Counted from the whole stretch's first letter, positions 2,912 to 10,392 are shown. The stretch is DNA of 63,908 nt, filler included, from Octopus bimaculoides (GCF_001194135.2; 6 parts of 5 records of this genome joined end to end with filler, not necessarily neighbours in it); one strand, 5' to 3'. Notes: generated from the letters alone by a model not told the origin. Numbers and translations are program-made.

Positions 2912-4075
2912 CTTCATCATCATCATCATCATTTAATGTTTGTTGTCCATGCTGGCATAGTTTAGATAGTTTGAACAGAGTTGGCAAGCTGGGGAGTTAC
3001 ACCAGACTTTAGTCTGATTTGGTCTGGTTTTTATGGCTGGATGCCCTTCCTAAAGCCAACCACTTTATAGAGTGTGCTGGGTGCTTATATGTGGCACTGC
3101 AAGGGTGCTTTTAAATGTTGCTGCACAGGCACTTTTACGCAGCACTACATGGGCACTTTTAAGTGGCATTGCATGGGTGCTTTCATGTGGCACCACCATG
3201 ATTGCTTCTTACGTGGCATCACCCCAGGTTTCTTGCAAGTCAGTCATCACCACCGGGGAAACTGGTCTTAACACCGCTGCTGCTGAGTATGGGTCTTCTT
3301 GAGTACAGCAAGGTGCCAAGCATCTTGGTCTTTTGTCATCTTGCCTGAAAAGTTCAGCGTCCTGAGATTGTCTTCAGTATTTCATCCCATATCTTCTGGG
3401 TCTCCCTCTTCCATATGTTCCATCTACTTTGAGACATTGGTACTTCTTTATGGAGCTGTCGGCATCCATTTGCATCACTTGACCAAACCAACAGTCTTCT
3501 CTTTTGCACACTGCATTTAATACCTCTTATGCCTGACTTCTCTCTCAATACACCAGTACTCTGTTGAACATGTACACTTACATTACACATCCAGCAGGGC
3601 ATACTAGCCTCATTCTTTTCTAACCTTCACATGTCCTCTGCATTCAGGGCCCACATTTCACTACCATGTAGTCCGTATATATTGCATCATAGAATTTTCC
3701 TTTCGCTCGGAGAGAGAAACCATTCATAGCCAACAGAGGTAAAAGCTCTCTGAATTTCCTCCACCCTATTCTTATTCTAGCTATCATACTCTCTGTGCAT
3801 CCTCCCCAACAATTGATTTGGTCCCCAAGGTAGCAGAAATTATCTCCTACCGCTAACAAGCCAGCAGGGCATTTAAGAGAATCAGTTTCCCGAGTCTCTA
3901 TAGTTTTTATACTCCCTGTGTATCTTCCTATTAATCCACTGCACCACTTGTGTGTCCATAGCTTATACTGGGTACACCATATGGTGTTCCTGCTTACACC
4001 TTTCCTACAAATTGTCAGTTTTCTTGCTTACTAAGACCATAGCCATTGCTAAGTTAACTTTAAGGCCCTTAGATT
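2912..4075 (-). mobile_element. RTE-clade LINE 3' fragment (RT C-terminus, 3' UTR and (GAT)n tail)
   Basis: Minus-strand FCYLGDQI...ARIRIGWRKFRELLPLL is an RTE RT C-terminal motif. The frame is broken by stops and the element ends at catcatcat at about 2912-2932. Confidence 0.8.
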
Positions 4076-4169
4076 CCAAGTTTTGCTTCCACACCTAGAA
4101 TTTCTCTTCTAGCTCTGATATGGAATCTGCTAAGTAGTTCCCTGGGGCTACTGGTCTTGAATTCCTCTT

Positions 4170-4438
4170 AGAAAATTACTATTTGTAAATCTCACAATGA
4201 GAGATATTCAGTAAAGATTATTTGCTAACATAACATGGCAGTCCTGGTTTAGGACGAATGTTGCTGTAATTTATCCCCAGGAGACATCGTCTTCAGCTGG
4301 CTATACAGCACAGTCTGTGTCCTTATATTTTCAAACAGGGAAATCTAACACCCCCACTCAGCTCAAAACAATATCTGTGTATCACGATTTCCGAGTTATT
4401 TCCCTTCATCAGCACAGAATAATTGTTCAGCTAGAGGT
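4170..4438 (-). repeat. Left arm of the 352-bp hammerhead-bearing repeat array
   Basis: Homologous to 6286-6395 in direct orientation and to 6409-6975 in inverted orientation. Confidence 0.9.
4367..4427 (-). ncRNA. Type I hammerhead ribozyme motif, copy A
   Basis: UCUGUG-CUGAUGA-A-GGG(AAAUAA)CUC-G-GAAA-UCGUGAU-A-CACAGA. Stem I is UCUGUG/CACAGA, extended by AACAAU/AUUGUU. Stem III is palindromic AUCG/UGAU. The predicted cleavage triplet is AUA. Confidence 0.7.
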
Positions 4439-6199
4439 TAATTCTTTATTACAGGCACAAGGCCTAATTGCAGAGGGGACATACAAAGACATGCTGGAAC
4501 ATAAAACATATGAAGAATGATTGTGAAATGAATAAAATTACAATGCTCCCACTATGAGATGAAACCGTGGATTCCTTTTCTTTAAACCATTACATTTTAC
4601 ATAACTTCTAGCCTCGCTCCGAGTCGAAACCGTGACTTCCCTCTTCGCTTTTACCCTACAATTATAAACCTTTTAAACAAATGTTCATACAGGACTTACA
4701 CATTTCTTTTCCTTTTTAAACTAAAAGTCACTCAAATGTATTTAACAAAGAAACTTTTACAAAACCTGTTCATTCAGCAGTTTCAAAATTTACTTGTTTT
4801 TTCTTTTTTTTTCCATAATAGTCCAAATATTTTTTCCTCAGTCTTTACAAAATTATAATGACTTACCACTTCTGTCTCTCACAATGTCTTTCAATTCTCT
4901 GCACTCCTTTTAAGTTGGGGTGTCCTTCTCACTATTATTTTTGTTTTTGTTTGTTTTTCATGTTGTCTCTTTTTGTTTCTATTTTCCTGCTGTTTTGTGT
5001 GTTCTTGTATTTTCGTCTCTAAGTCTGTGTGTTCATGTATTTGTGTGTCTGTGTGTTCATGTATTTGTGTGTCTGTGTGTTCATTTGACTGCAACTCAAC
5101 GTTTCATCTGTGTGTCTATGTTTTTAGGTTTCCGTAATTCTGGGTTGTCTTGTTTCTGGTCTGAATGACTCTGTACTTTTGATTCCTTTGCTGGTACTTC
5201 CACTGGTAAATTTTCTCCCTTTCTCTTCATGGGTTGAGTTTTTTCTTCCATTCCTTTACACTTCTTCAATTCCACTGTCGTTGGTGACTTTTTTCTCTCT
5301 CTTTTCATGGGTTTTACCACCGCAAAATCCCCATCCTGTTCTGTTTTCTGTTTCTGCTTTTTTTCCACCACTATATCTTCCTCAACACTCTCTTCCACCA
5401 TTTCTACTGCTGCTCTAGGGCATTTCCTTCTCAAGTGCCCTCTTTCACCGCATCTGTAACATTTTGGGGGTCTCCCCTCCAACATTATTTCCAATTTTTC
5501 ACCGTTTGGTAATTCCAAAGTTTCTGCCATTTCATCATAATATTTTGGGCTTACTGCACAGATTATTTCAATGCCATAACCCCAGAAATTCAATTGTTGT
5601 GTTCTGCTTACTATGCCTATGCTCAGGTTTTCTCTAACCTTCCTCAGCTCAAAATTAAAAGTTGCGTCTATTACCCATTCTGGGTCTATCGATGGTGGGA
5701 TCCTTCCCACCCTCACCCTGACGATTCTTTTGCTCCAACAGTTCGGCATCAACATCCATTTTACTCCCGTTAACATTGTGCTGCCGGATGTTTTCGCATC
5801 CTCTACTGAAAGAAAGGTTACTACTATAGTTCCGTATCTTCTTCCTCTTGTAAAAAACGTTATCTTTTCTCCCATGTTCACCACCAACATTTCCTCTATC
5901 TCTTCCTGCGGCGCGTGTTCTAGTCTCCCATTTTCATTTGAAAATGTTCTGAATATTACCGTCTTGCTTTCCATTTTTCTTTTTTCCTCCTCTGGCAGGG
6001 TCATTTTTATGTTTGACCCTTCTTTCTTTACATTCTCACAATATTTAGTTATCTTCTCTTCATTCCACTCCATCTTCTCCGGCTTCAGCACACGTGGGTC
6101 TATGGCATCTTGACCTCCTGTAGCTTTTTCATAACTTTTCATTTTTTCAATTGTTTCGCACAAAAATTTTGCTTAGTATTCTTCAAAAAACAACAAAAA
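4439..6199 (-). mobile_element. ORF1-only (non-autonomous) L1/Tx1-like retroposon insert
   Basis: Bounded by a 15-nt duplication (4424-4438 tgttcagctagaggt and 6200-6214 tgttcggctagcggt). Minus-strand AATAAA lies about 10 nt from the 3' end. It has a single ORF1-like gene and no endonuclease or RT sequence. Confidence 0.65.
5096..6142 (-). CDS. LINE ORF1/gag-like nucleic-acid-binding protein (RRM-like region plus CX2CX4HX4C zinc knuckle), 348 aa from the ATG
   Basis: Uninterrupted ORF. It has the zinc knuckle CYRCGERGHLRRKC, RRM-like segments (TIVVTFLSVEDA; VRVRVGRIPP) and a charged low-complexity C-tail. The ORF-track start at 6163 is TTG; the first ATG is at 6142. Confidence 0.85.
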   Translation of the reverse strand: MKSYEKATGGQDAIDPRVLKPEKMEWNEEKITKYCENVKKEGSNIKMTLPEEEKRKMESKTVIFRTFSNENGRLEHAPQEEIEEMLVVNMGEKITFFTRGRRYGTIVVTFLSVEDAKTSGSTMLTGVKWMLMPNCWSKRIVRVRVGRIPPSIDPEWVIDATFNFELRKVRENLSIGIVSRTQQLNFWGYGIEIICAVSPKYYDEMAETLELPNGEKLEIMLEGRPPKCYRCGERGHLRRKCPRAAVEMVEESVEEDIVVEKKQKQKTEQDGDFAVVKPMKRERKKSPTTVELKKCKGMEEKTQPMKRKGENLPVEVPAKESKVQSHSDQKQDNPELRKPKNIDTQMKR

Positions 6200-6408
6200 T
6201 GTTCGGCTAGCGGTAGCACTGTCAAATTCCTATTTGAAATATATCGTTTTCAAAGTGACAACTAGTCACTGATCTATAAATTAAAAAATTACTATTTGTA
6301 AATCTCACAATGAGAGATATTCAGTAACAATACTTTAGAGTAAAGATTATTTGTCAACATAACATGGCAGTCCTGGTTTAGGACGAATGTTGCTGGTTTA
6401 GGATGAAT

Positions 6409-6453
6409 TCTGTGCTGATGAAGGGAAATAACCTGGAAATTGCGTTACACAGA
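6409..6453 (+). ncRNA. Type I hammerhead ribozyme motif, copy B (one stem III mismatch)
   Basis: UCUGUG-CUGAUGA-A-GGG(AAAUAA)CCU-G-GAAA-UUGCGUU-A-CACAGA. Confidence 0.55.
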
Positions 6454-6751
6454 TATTGTTTTGATCTGAATGCGGGTGCTAGATTCCCTTGTTCGAAAAT
6501 AAAGGTCACAGATCGTGTTGTATAGTCAGCTGGAGACGATGTCTCCTGGGGTTAAATTAGAGCAACATTCATCGTAAACCAGGACTGCCATGTTATGTTG
6601 GCAAATAATCTTTACTCCAAAGTACTGTTGCTGAATGTCTCTCATTATGAAATTTACAAATAGTAATTTTCTAATTTATAGATCAGTGACTAGTTGTCAC
6701 TTTGGAAACTATATATTTTGAATGGGAATTTGGCAGCACCACCTCTAGTCG

Positions 6752-6812
6752 AACAATTATTCTGTGCTGATGAAGGGAAATAACCTGGAAATTGCGATAC
6801 ACAGATATTGTT
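6752..6812 (+). ncRNA. Type I hammerhead ribozyme motif, copy C
   Basis: AACAAU-UAU-UCUGUG-CUGAUGA-A-GGG(AAAUAA)CCU-G-GAAA-UUGCGAU-A-CACAGA-U-AUUGUU. Stem III is palindromic AUUG/CGAU. Confidence 0.7.
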
Positions 6813-6984
6813 TCAAGTTGAGTGGGGGTGCTAGATTCCTTTGTTCGAAAATATAAGGCCACAGATCGTGTCGTATAGCCAGCTGGAGATTATGTCTCCT
6901 GGGGCTACATTACAGCAACATTTGTCGTAAACCAGGACTGCCATGTTATGTTGGCAGATAATCTTTACTTGAATTTCTCTGTTA

Positions 6985-7200
6985 TGGGCTGGCTGGAGGA
7001 CAGTGATGAAAAGAACGGGATGAATGACTAAACCTTGATGAACATCTACCTGTACACCAAATTCTTTGCTGTGCTTGTGATTAACTCTCACCTTACTGAC
7101 AGTATCTTTGTACATAGCCTGTACAGCTTTCATCAGCCACTCTTCTAACCTCAGCCTCTTTGGTGCCCACCATATCACACACTGGGGGTACACTGTCGAA
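6985..7200 (-). mobile_element. RTE LINE reverse-transcriptase fragment
   Basis: RLRLEEWLMKAVQAMYKDTVSKVRV...VDVHQGLVIHPVLFITVL is a decayed QG motif region. Confidence 0.8.
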
Positions 7201-7449
7201 GGTTTTGTACACGCACACACAAATACACACACACACACACACACATATAGGAGTGTACAAACCAAAGAAAGAGGCCCTCTTAGCACATTTGGTAGGTGTT
7301 ACATATATTTTAAAATAAGAGTTTGATTCAGCTCCACATGGTTTAAAGTTTTGTGGACTTGTAATGTGAATGCATCTCATCAGATAGTGAGAGAAGTGTA
7401 ATGGGATTTGGGAAAATTTCAAGATGATTTCTAGATATTAATTGGTCTG

Positions 7450-8989: not shown

Positions 8990-9846
8990 GATGTCTCATA
9001 AGTATTTAGCTAACTGATTGGTTAAATGGCAACTCATCTGACCAATGTACAAAAGAAAGCATTTAGTGTCCTGAATTCCTCTATTATCGCCTGGAGGACT
9101 ATGATAAATAGGAGGGGGCTGGGGACAGACCCTTAGTGGACCCCTACCTCCACCCGGAATTCTTCACTGTACTCATTGCCAACACTCAAACTCTCACCTT
9201 ACTGACAGCGTCTCTGTACATGGCTCGCACAGCTCTCACTAACCATTATTCAATCCCTAGTTTCCTCATTGACCACCAGATGAGAGATTGGGGAACCCTG
9301 TCGAAGGCTTTCTCCATGTCAACGAAAGCCAGGTACAGAGGTTTATCCTTGGCTAGGTATTTCTCCTGAAGCTGTCTTACCAGAAATATAGCATCAGTGG
9401 TGCTTTTCCCTGGCATGGACCCAAACTGCATTTCATCTAAACTGACTTGCTCCCTAAGTAATTGAGCTATGACCCCCTCCGTGACTTTCATTACCTGATC
9501 TAAAAGCTTAATACCTCTGTAATTATTTGTATCTAATGCGTCACCTTTACCTTTGTAGCAGTTGACGATGGTGCTGCTACACCAGTCATTGGGTATGATT
9601 TCTTTGTGTATCACCTGGTTAACAATATGGGTGACTAGGCTATAGCCGACACTGCCAGATATTTTGAGCATCTCTGCAGTGATTCCTGATGGGCCGGGGG
9701 CTTTCCCTGTCTTCATACTCTTAATTGCTTTATCTACCATGGTACTGTCAACTCGGATAGCTGGTCCCTCTGTTGGGTCGACATTCGGCAGACTCTCTTT
9801 CTCCCATTCATTCTCTTTATTGAGCAATCTTTCGTAGTGGCGTCTC
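8990..9846 (-). mobile_element. RTE LINE reverse-transcriptase core fragment, truncated by a gap
   Basis: KAPGPSGI, NYRGIKLL, QFGSMPGKSTTDAIF and AFVDMEKAFDRVP are canonical non-LTR RT motifs. Confidence 0.92.
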
Positions 9847-10392
9847 NNNNNNNNNNNNNNNNNNNNNNNNNNNNNNNNNNNNNNNNNNNNNNNNNNNNNN
9901 NNNNNNNNNNNNNNNNNNNNNNNNNNNNNNNNNNNNNNNNNNNNNNNNNNNNNNNNNNNNNNNNNNNNNNNNNNNNNNNNNNNNNNNNNNNNNNNNNNNN
10001 NNNNNNNNNNNNNNNNNNNNNNNNNNNNNNNNNNNNNNNNNNNNNNNNNNNNNNNNNNNNNNNNNNNNNNNNNNNNNNNNNNNNNNNNNNNNNNNNNNNN
10101 NNNNNNNNNNNNNNNNNNNNNNNNNNNNNNNNNNNNNNNNNNNNNNNNNNNNNNNNNNNNNNNNNNNNNNNNNNNNNNNNNNNNNNNNNNNNNNNNNNNN
10201 NNNNNNNNNNNNNNNNNNNNNNNNNNNNNNNNNNNNNNNNNNNNNNNNNNNNNNNNNNNNNNNNNNNNNNNNNNNNNNNNNNNNNNNNNNNNNNNNNNNN
10301 NNNNNNNNNNNNNNNNNNNNNNNNNNNNNNNNNNNNNNNNNNNNNNNNNNNNNNNNNNNNNNNNNNNNNNNNNNNNNNNNNNNNNNNNNNNN

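Follow-up and report, generated by a model that had tools for sequence, protein, structure and literature searches.

A composite insertion of hammerhead-bearing repeats and an ORF1-like gene in Octopus bimaculoides

The stretch of DNA analysed here (the window; 63,908 nt, filler included) comes from Octopus bimaculoides (GCF_001194135.2) and consists of six parts of five records of this genome, joined end to end with filler. At positions 4169-6967 it carries a composite element, in which a gene resembling open reading frame 1 (ORF1) of long interspersed nuclear elements (LINEs) lies between copies of a ~352-nt repeat that bears a hammerhead ribozyme motif. An earlier note on this DNA had regarded the gene as embedded in a hammerhead repeat array; instead, the repeats and the gene form a single 2.8-kb insertion, bounded by a target-site duplication (TSD) and located inside an old LINE reverse transcriptase (RT) gene, and not a gene placed in a pre-existing array. 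Read along the minus strand, the composite consists of 1.6 inverted 352-nt monomers, a partial direct monomer, a 57-nt leader, a 348-aa open reading frame (ORF), a 3′ untranslated region (UTR) with AATAAA, and a monomer that begins with the hammerhead, and each of these parts lies where the note had placed it. The features of the locus are listed below, where T1 is a recurrent terminus of the repeat and SINE stands for short interspersed element.

3300..4155, minus: 3′ part of the host LINE RT gene, old and decayed; conceptual translation ...SSPRELL / LADSISELEEKF.VWKQNLESKGLKVN...
4156..4168: left copy of the TSD, CTTGAATTCCTCT
4168..4209, minus: one-end "tail", 42 nt of monomer sequence past T1, at this insertion end only
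4210..4438, minus: downstream hammerhead-bearing repeat, like a pseudo-long terminal repeat (pLTR), ending at T1 (...AATCTTTACT)
4374..4418, minus: hammerhead motif W1, type I, with 1-bp helix III and self-complementary loop; predicted cleavage 4380/4379
4424..4438, minus: downstream copy of the 15-nt direct repeat bracketing the ORF segment, ACCTCTAGCTGAACA
4439..5095, minus: 3′ UTR of the ORF segment; AATAAA at 4445-4450, LINE/SINE-type 3′ tail GGCCTTGTGCCTGTAATAAAG (4444-4464)
5096..6142, minus: ORF, 348 aa plus stop (ATG at 6142, stop at 5096-5098)
5333-5419, minus: long helix in the AlphaFold2 model, then a disordered basic tail
5417-5464, minus: CCHC knuckle, aa 227-242 (Pfam zf-CCHC, E = 1.9e-5)
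5480-5728, minus: RRM-like domain 2, aa 139-221
5744-5962, minus: RRM-like domain 1, aa 61-133
6143..6199, minus: 57-nt 5′ leader of the ORF segment; its start, TTTTTGTTG.TTTT..GAAGA, is common to L001 and L002 (see below)
6200-6214, minus: upstream copy of the 15-nt bracket, the last 15 nt of the upstream partial repeat, ACCGCTAGCCGAACA
6200..6394, minus: upstream partial repeat in direct orientation, monomer positions ~155-352, lacking the hammerhead
6395..6406: inversion junction, 12-13 nt duplicating the adjacent GGTTTAGGAYGAA, read directly from the sequence
6407..6967, plus: inverted arm, 1.6 tandem monomers (6407-6758, 6759-6967) without the ORF, ending at T1
6968..6980: right copy of the TSD, CTTGAATTTCTCT
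6981..7290, minus: 5′ part of the same host LINE RT gene, ...FDSVP...HQGLVIHPVLFITVLQPAHN

Host site and repeat arms

The two copies of the 13-bp TSD agree at 12 of 13 positions, a match with a chance probability of ~6e-7 at one fixed offset. When 4169-6980 is excised in silico, the minus-strand flanks read as one decayed LINE RT, whose translation across the reconstructed empty site runs ...HQGLVIHPVLFITVLQPAHNEEFK and then SSPRELL / LADSISELEEKF.VWKQNLESKGLKVN..., with motif B preceding the junction and the (Y)AD(D/S) region following ~33 aa later, which is the usual spacing. Because the RT is collinear once the composite is removed, the RT fragments are host-site sequence and do not belong to the composite. 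Within 4169-6967, neither an ORF nor a Pfam match for an RT or an endonuclease (EN) was found, in line with the absence of both that had been noted before. No RVT_1 match was returned by Pfam for the joined host RT translation, and a homologue search with the degenerate RT ORF 6831-7286 found nothing. This minus-strand ORF runs from the RT into the monomer, and the monomer was therefore considered as a piece of the LINE RT gene, which was ruled out by the collinear resumption of the RT at 4155. The host part 6981-7290 shares 72-73% identity with a second LINE copy, which is located at 9189-9312 and adjoins an RVT_1-positive ORF at 9246-9827; as a paralogous empty site this copy was rejected, since the overlap is only 124 nt and does not span the insertion site. 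Directly beside the ORF at 9246-9827 lies an N run (assembly gap, 9837-10392), and the ORFs listed across this gap are artefacts.

The two plus-strand copies of the repeat (6407-6758 and 6759-6967), which make up the 1.6 opposite-orientation monomers described earlier, are arranged head to tail and are 90-92% identical, and the oppositely oriented copies, namely the partial one running from 6394 to 6200 and the hammerhead-bearing one from 4438 to 4168, show 84-88% identity. The 352-nt repeat was not reported by TRF. The downstream repeat (4210-4438) is 88% complementary to 6741-6969 and can be aligned with 7054-7282 of the related locus L004, and the spacing of 2113-2129 nt from the upstream to the downstream direct repeat gives the unit length. 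Between the inverted arm and the beginning of the direct arm there is an overlap of ~55 nt. T1 (...AATCTTTACT) forms the outer end of the inverted arm, and the direct arm comprises T1 and the 42-nt tail. The downstream arm of the window lacks 16 nt (CTAAAGTATTGTTACT) that other copies carry right after T1 (4209/4210 vs 6323-6338); these nucleotides are bounded by TTACT repeats, so that the tail may have been joined through a template switch at T1. Age and decay are evident in the window copy, whose arms have diverged by 4-12% and whose protein has had its tail truncated by a frameshift.

Protein and ancestry of the ORF segment

The reading frame of 348 aa reported for the ORF is confirmed, but it is not fully intact: relative to L004, a 2-nt deletion near 5103 creates its stop codon and cuts off ~60 aa of a low-complexity tail. 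Consequently to this frameshift, the 5′ part of the present 3′ UTR (to about 4925) is formerly coding sequence, and it contains a perfect 24-nt tandem repeat (5023-5084, 2.6 copies), with EHTDTQIH repeats readable in another frame. In L004, the N-terminal half of the ORF is frameshifted. The leader is the most conserved segment (95% identical to that of L004), and the 3′ end of the ORF segment is conserved in L001-L004 and L008. On the plus strand, a low-complexity, probably spurious 166-aa ORF (5613-6113) lies antisense to the gene.

The protein is modelled as two RRM-like domains followed by one CCHC knuckle. The knuckle is recognised by Pfam, which gives no RRM match on the RRM region, and a profile search against PDB sequences returned zinc-knuckle matches only, such as ZCCHC8 and retroviral nucleocapsid; the RRM part of the RRM/CCHC assignment made in the earlier note thus emerged only after deep alignment, AlphaFold2 prediction and Foldseek comparison. 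With 5 sequences, the AlphaFold2 model had a predicted local distance difference test score (pLDDT) of 35, and with an alignment of 110 sequences the pLDDT was 80 and exceeded 90 at residues ~20-270, where two beta-alpha-beta-beta-alpha-beta units precede the knuckle, the helix and the tail. The top Foldseek matches in the PDB were tandem-RRM proteins, including hnRNP A1 UP1, NONO/SFPQ, Prp24 and raver1, at probabilities of 0.97-0.99. A profile search collected 573 relatives of the ORF, and the sources that were looked up are mostly octopod; the closest of the relatives found in protein searches come from Octopus vulgaris, O. sinensis and O. bimaculoides, and Argonauta is among the sources of more distant members. 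A word-index search with the profile, covering 8000 candidates, gave at least 5 proteins. These ORFs are at present annotated as "uncharacterized protein", and an exact look-up found neither the window ORF nor P0003 on record. The comparison of ORF copies that the earlier note had suggested gave pairwise dN/dS values of 0.12-0.42, which indicates that the protein has been under purifying selection.

The designation of the gene as ORF1-like is borne out by its homologues, which are the ORF1 of octopus LINEs whose ORF2 encodes APE, RT and zf-RVT domains. For three family members of greater divergence, the position as ORF1 of a LINE is demonstrable: an APE ORF comes after P0141 in L005, P0011 has APE and zf-RVT ORFs behind it in L006 (O. 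sinensis), and P0015 lies upstream of an intact 1132-aa APE-RT ORF2 in a 5.28-kb tandem array of O. vulgaris (L009). No ORF2 follows the ORF in the window or in the five other composites described below. The array in L009 (1-11026, OX597840.1) is arranged head to tail with a period of 5284 nt and is made up of an apparently intact LINE that may be active. The LINE in L006 (7720-13380, CM016872.1) has a 615-aa ORF1, APE and zf-RVT, with its ORF2 split into several ORFs, and (ATT)n lies on both of its sides, representing either a microsatellite target or an (ATT)n tail. L005 is a GC-rich (53%) LINE contig from a non-octopus metagenome; the motif GGCCTTGTGCCCTGTA at 525-545, ~480 nt upstream of its ORF1, could be the conserved LINE tail of an upstream copy, or could be due to chance.

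The tail of the ORF segment, GGCCTTGTGCCTGTAATAAAGAATTA, matches dispersed SINE-like tails in octopus loci (z ~9, 0/2000 shuffles), and its resemblance to the 3′ end of the L006 LINE is weaker (z = 3, 28/2000 shuffles). The segment is bracketed by the 15-nt direct repeat at 4424-4438 and 6200-6214, whereas an uninterrupted monomer contains this sequence once, as ACCTCTAGTCGAACA at 6741-6755 in the inverted arm; the same bracket and junctions occur in L004, and an analogous bracket of ~20 nt in L002. The ORF segment (4439-6199) is best explained as a LINE derivative that has kept the 5′ leader, ORF1 and a LINE-type 3′ tail and has lost ORF2, and the LINE/SINE-type tail together with the bracket suggests an ancient LINE-mediated capture, in which an ORF2-less LINE copy entered a monomer. 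Dispersed short elements ending in ...CCCC..AATT.C(A/T)GGCCYTGTGCYTGTAATAGAAAGAATTATT were also seen in L003 at 12575(-), 19654(-), 12343(-) and 4178(+), and in L006 at 19832(-), 14776(+) and 21000(-); the elements ending in GGCCYTGTGCYTGTAATAGAAAGAATTATT probably represent an abundant octopus SINE whose 3′ tail is held in common with the LINE family and the ORF segment.

Recurrence of the composite and conservation of the hammerhead

Six composites were examined, namely that of the window and those at the O. vulgaris loci L001, L002, L003, L004 and L008. The ORF lies inside hammerhead repeats at all five further loci, and the ORF copies without the monomer, which the earlier note would have taken as the mark of a one-off chance insertion, number 0/6. 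L004 (OX597821.1) aligns without interruption to the window from 6391 to 4211, with 79% identity over 2263 nt and identical junctions, the alignment spanning the partial monomer, leader, ORF, 3′ UTR and hammerhead monomer. The ORFs of L001, L002, L003 and L008 show 40-50% protein identity, and their flanking repeats can barely be aligned to the nucleotides of the window, with which they share short blocks (GCTGRGTGGGGGTG after the hammerhead, and GGCAGTCC...AGGACGAATG). The layout is nevertheless common, in that a conserved 3′ end of the ORF segment (...GGCCWTGTGCCTRTAATAAAGA) is followed by the hammerhead within 20-30 nt, and the direct repeats are spaced by 1990-2129 nt. The ORF segment occupies the same repeat site in 6/6 loci. 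The chimera has thus been copied as one unit and is present at no fewer than six genomic sites; in L008, the inverted arm of 780 nt is 89% identical to the direct copy and contains ~530 nt of the 3′ part of the ORF segment joined to the repeat, and the presence of both 3′ UTR and repeat in this arm likewise indicates that the chimera was copied whole. No RT or EN was found in composites L001-L004 and L008.

Insertions of Penelope-like elements (PLEs) consist of partial tandems that form pLTRs, and their 5′ end often bears an inverted, 5′-truncated copy (Craig et al. 2021, PMC8557442). A tail of 30-40 bp at one end, pLTR hammerheads and frequent insertion into (TA)n have also been described (PMC8557442). 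This anatomy was found in the window, L001, L003, L004 and L008. An inverted arm is present in all six composites; the T1/tail arrangement of the window is reversed in L004, where the tail measures 58 nt, a tail of 40 nt is present on the inverted arm of L001, and one of ~55 nt on the direct arm of L008. In L002, an inverted arm and a hammerhead are present and the tail is undelimited. The targets of L001, L002, L003 and L008 are (TA)n or (TC)n(TA)n, and every insertion has either a TSD of its own or a microsatellite as its target. A further contig (L007; Logan SRR11869390, 3539 nt) carries two decayed copies of another ORF subfamily, ~1.4-1.6 kb apart, of which the first ends in ATAATAAAGG; it shows no recognisable hammerhead.

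The hammerhead motif, UCUGUG-CUGAUGA-AGGGAAAUAACYYG-GAAA-UYGYGA-UA/CACAGA (the slash marking the predicted cleavage), occurs in the window at 4418-4374 (-), 6409-6453 (+) and 6761-6805 (+). A descriptor demanding the full core, a 4-bp helix II with one mismatch allowed and at least 5/6 helix I pairs matches these three sites only, with 0.0045 matches expected per 11.1 kb under a first-order Markov model of the window. In W1, the core is intact, helix I has 6 bp, and helix II has 3 bp and an A.G mismatch. Its predicted cleavage at 4380/4379 agrees with the AUA site proposed previously at about 4380, and the two hammerheads of the inverted arm are predicted to be cleaved at 6447/6448 and 6799/6800. 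The core (C3-U4-G5-A6-N7-G8-A9, G12-A13-A14, A15.1-U16.1, and H17 other than G) is complete in the three window copies, L001 and L003. Three types of helices were distinguished:

Window type: helix I UCUGUG/CACAGA; helix II a.g-GC-GU-GC; helix III AUCGUGAU or AUUGCGAU
L003 type: helix I UCCAGA/UCUGGG; helix II UA-GC-AU-GC; helix III ACUAGU
L008 type: helix I CCUGAA/UUCAGG; helix II UA-GC-GC-GC; helix III CAUGCAUG

Helix I keeps its 6 bp in all three variants, and 4/6 of its pairs are compensatory, with both sides changed. In an alignment of 7 hammerhead sequences, 89.6% of cells pair as compared with 79.4% in shuffles (0/500), and slid pairing controls are 13-55% paired. Self-complementarity of the helix III element is complete in W1, W3 and the L003 type, and amounts to 3/4 in W2 and 4/5 in L008; for W3, the predicted minimum free energy dimer takes the form of a double hammerhead whose intermolecular helix III has 8 bp. 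Judged from these sequences, the hammerhead fold is conserved, and self-cleavage is a prediction from it. The motif fits the metazoan dimeric type of PLEs, whose minimal type I hammerheads cleave poorly in vitro (PMC4209133). As a candidate for a decayed hammerhead duplicate, the 57-nt leader was rejected, its alignment being no better than shuffles (761/2000, 991/2000 and 1947/2000). L001 at 9542(+) and L006 at 13405(+) share a short repeat, CTGAAGA...GCTCGAAAC(R)TAAG, that has a hammerhead-like look and does not satisfy the descriptor.

Origin, propagation and comparison with known elements

Like the PLEs Penelope/Poseidon, Neptune and Nematis, the composite has pLTRs, an inverted 5′-truncated copy, a one-end tail and microsatellite targets (PMC8557442), and a minimal or dimeric type I hammerhead in the terminal repeat (PMC8557442, PMC4209133). 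In contrast to them, it lacks the telomerase-like RT and GIY-YIG, its sole gene is a LINE-type ORF1, and its length is ~2.1 kb instead of 3-4 kb; without RT and EN it is therefore not filed as a PLE, some of which carry an esterase-type ORF1. Animal non-LTR retrozymes are tandem arrays of 170-400-nt monomers with type I hammerheads (Cervera & de la Pena 2020; Li et al. 2026 preprint), which are non-autonomous and thought to be derived from and dependent on PLEs. The ORF-less inverted arm (6407-6967), with 1.6 tandem 352-nt monomers and two hammerheads, fits this description. Retrozymes are stated to have no protein-coding regions, with PLEs or Terminons proposed as mobilisers (PMC7761336), and the preprint of Li et al. 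(2026), in which vertebrate retrozymes are derived from PLE pLTRs, mentions neither ORF cargo nor molluscs; the composite, on the other hand, has a conserved 1.76-kb coding segment between monomers, whose 348-aa ORF is under purifying selection. Terminons/Athena, the giant PLE-based elements of rotifers, resemble it as PLE-related elements with hammerheads and captured extra ORFs, but they have retained the Athena RT, span tens of kb and are associated with telomeres, whereas the composite is small, RT-less and interstitial. HAL1 (half-L1) is a LINE derivative with ORF1 and the 3′ end but without ORF2, which uses enzymes in trans and has LINE termini. Unlike HAL1, the ORF1 segment of the composite sits in every case within a hammerhead repeat, and it is this repeat that provides the ends of the insertion. 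The ORF1p of Jockey-like LINEs has one or two RRMs with CCHC knuckle(s) immediately after them (Khazina & Weichenrieder 2009; Schneider et al. 2013, PMC3905857), and the window protein has the same architecture and homologues in APE/RT LINEs; it differs in that no ORF2 follows and that Pfam RRM/ORF1 models miss it, the knuckle model alone giving a match. The composite is thus a combination of PLE/retrozyme repeats with an ORF1-only LINE derivative. In the literature searched, an RT-less hammerhead/pLTR element with an RRM-CCHC ORF1 was not described, which is no proof of novelty.

We consider it probable that these loci belong to a family of composite, RT-less retroelements in octopods, whose ~2.1-kb unit has a PLE/retrozyme-type repeat outside and a LINE ORF1 derivative inside. 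This corresponds to the first of two readings in the earlier note, a composite mobile unit of PLE-like architecture with an RNP-forming type of protein as cargo, which is supported by the insertion's own TSD and by the five other loci. The unit structure, the TSD, the recurrent anatomy, the selection on the ORF and the conserved hammerhead fold are observed; the mechanism behind them could be as follows. In an ancestral monomer, a LINE-mediated insertion would have brought the ORF1 segment to a position ~10-25 nt upstream of the hammerhead and left the 15-nt duplication. Transcription through the repeats would yield read-through or multimeric transcripts, which paired (dimeric) hammerheads may cut into 2.1-kb units with ends at 4380/4379, and the mRNA could be a capped transcript that receives its poly(A) at the AATAAA, ~25 nt ahead of the ribozyme. 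The ORF1p-like chaperone may bind the element's own RNA in cis to form a ribonucleoprotein (RNP), and RT and EN acting in trans could then copy this RNP, the insertion anatomy making an autonomous PLE the likeliest supplier. The layout of the window copy fits a template of the order monomer, monomer, leader-ORF-3′ UTR, monomer. A more specific form of this proposal, offered tentatively, is that of a protein-coding, Penelope-dependent and hammerhead-processed retrozyme, a PLE x LINE chimera in which a captured LINE ORF1p would package its own 2.1-kb, possibly circular RNA.

Several points weigh against the existence of such a family or its proposed mode of propagation. TSDs, 5′ inversions (by twin priming) and AT-rich targets are also products of LINEs, and a LINE tail is present inside the unit. 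Hammerhead cores are mutated in L002, L004 and L008, helix II has 3-4 bp and is closed in the window type by a non-canonical A.G, and the covariation comes from approximately three independent lineages. The Rfam hammerhead models gave no match at E<=10 in the window, the loci or 121-151-nt stretches, a negative that is uninformative given that Rfam also misses the canonical-looking L003 motif, reflecting the need of its models for a real helix III. The source RNA of the window copy kept at least three hammerheads uncut, which suggests that cleavage is at best inefficient. All loci were found by protein homology, which favours ORF-containing copies, and with such sampling of the six loci solo ORF segments could have been missed. 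No gene for a Penelope-like RT/GIY-YIG was found in any examined locus; no search aimed at a PLE with matching repeats was made.

Three other explanations were weighed. In a two-step nesting, ORF-less repeats would have been inserted before a HAL1-like, ORF1-only derivative, which the ORF2p of its parent would have placed always at the same site upstream of the hammerhead. The LINE/SINE-type tail, the 15-nt bracket of monomer sequence and the unoccupied site at 6741-6755 in the inverted arm agree with this, as do the relatives, which are ORF1 of L1/Tx1-type LINEs with zf-RVT, a group that includes target-specific members. However, hammerhead repeats contain none of the autonomous LINE copies examined, which occupy (ATT)n or a tandem array of their own, and none of the SINE-like tails, which are dispersed, a distribution that argues against repeated site-specific targeting; the L008 arm would need a second, truncated insertion of opposite orientation at the same site; all six ORF segments extend to the 5′ leader, unlike typical 5′-truncated LINE products; and the ORF and repeat subfamilies co-diverge. 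We therefore regard nesting as unlikely, and the second reading of the earlier note, an element targeting hammerhead repeats, is disfavoured as an ongoing mechanism by the location of the relatives and by the L008 arm, although it probably describes the origin of the chimera.

Mobilisation of the whole composite by LINE machinery, with the repeats as part of a long non-autonomous RNA and the inverted arms produced by twin priming, appears slightly less likely again. APE-type target-primed reverse transcription could account for the 13-bp TSD, the ~55-nt overlap of inverted and direct segments and the AT-rich or microsatellite targets, and intact autonomous LINEs with a homologous ORF1 occur in O. 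vulgaris; but the LINE tail is internal and absent from the outer 3′ ends, which fall within the repeat (termini T1/T2), inverted arms with partial tandems in 6/6 and one-end tails in 4/6 composites constitute a PLE signature unusual for LINEs, and terminal-repeat hammerheads are known from PLEs and retrozymes. It is very improbable that the ORF is a passive passenger or a host-domesticated gene and the hammerhead-like motif a non-functional relic. Many copies are pseudogenes (the N-half frameshift of L004, the tail frameshift of the window), several hammerhead cores are broken, and PLE-type minimal hammerheads cleave poorly in vitro (PMC4209133), whereas purifying selection acts on the ORF across subfamilies with almost unalignable repeats, the hammerhead helices covary, and the ORF is multi-copy, dispersed and TSD-bounded, and hence not a single host gene.

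In published descriptions, PLE pLTRs and animal retrozymes are non-coding, and no function has been established for the hammerheads in them. If the favoured reading of an RT-less composite family is true, non-autonomous ribozyme elements can gain coding cargo, two unrelated classes of retrotransposons can fuse parts into one propagating unit, and a parasite of a parasite may profit from retaining an RNA chaperone even without an RT. The composite also offers a concrete system for the function of PLE-type hammerheads, with a defined predicted cleavage site beside a poly(A) signal and a gene. Since octopus genomes are rich in repeats and have LINEs reported to be active, the family is relevant to the annotation of cephalopod genomes.

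Among features apart from the composite, a U2 snRNA-like match at 2480-2652 of L001 scores 36.8 bits, short of the 46 required by the gathering score, and probably marks a pseudogene of U2 or a repeat derived from it. A tRNA search of the window found none. The window contains an 89-nt tandem repeat at 2245-2441 (1.9 copies, 91%) with a nested 26-nt repeat, a 65-nt tandem repeat at 10747-10889 (2.2 copies, 72%), and a 53-nt inverted repeat (684-736 / 949-1001, 87%), the arms of which are 212 nt apart and possibly form a small foldback or an element like a miniature inverted-repeat transposable element (MITE).

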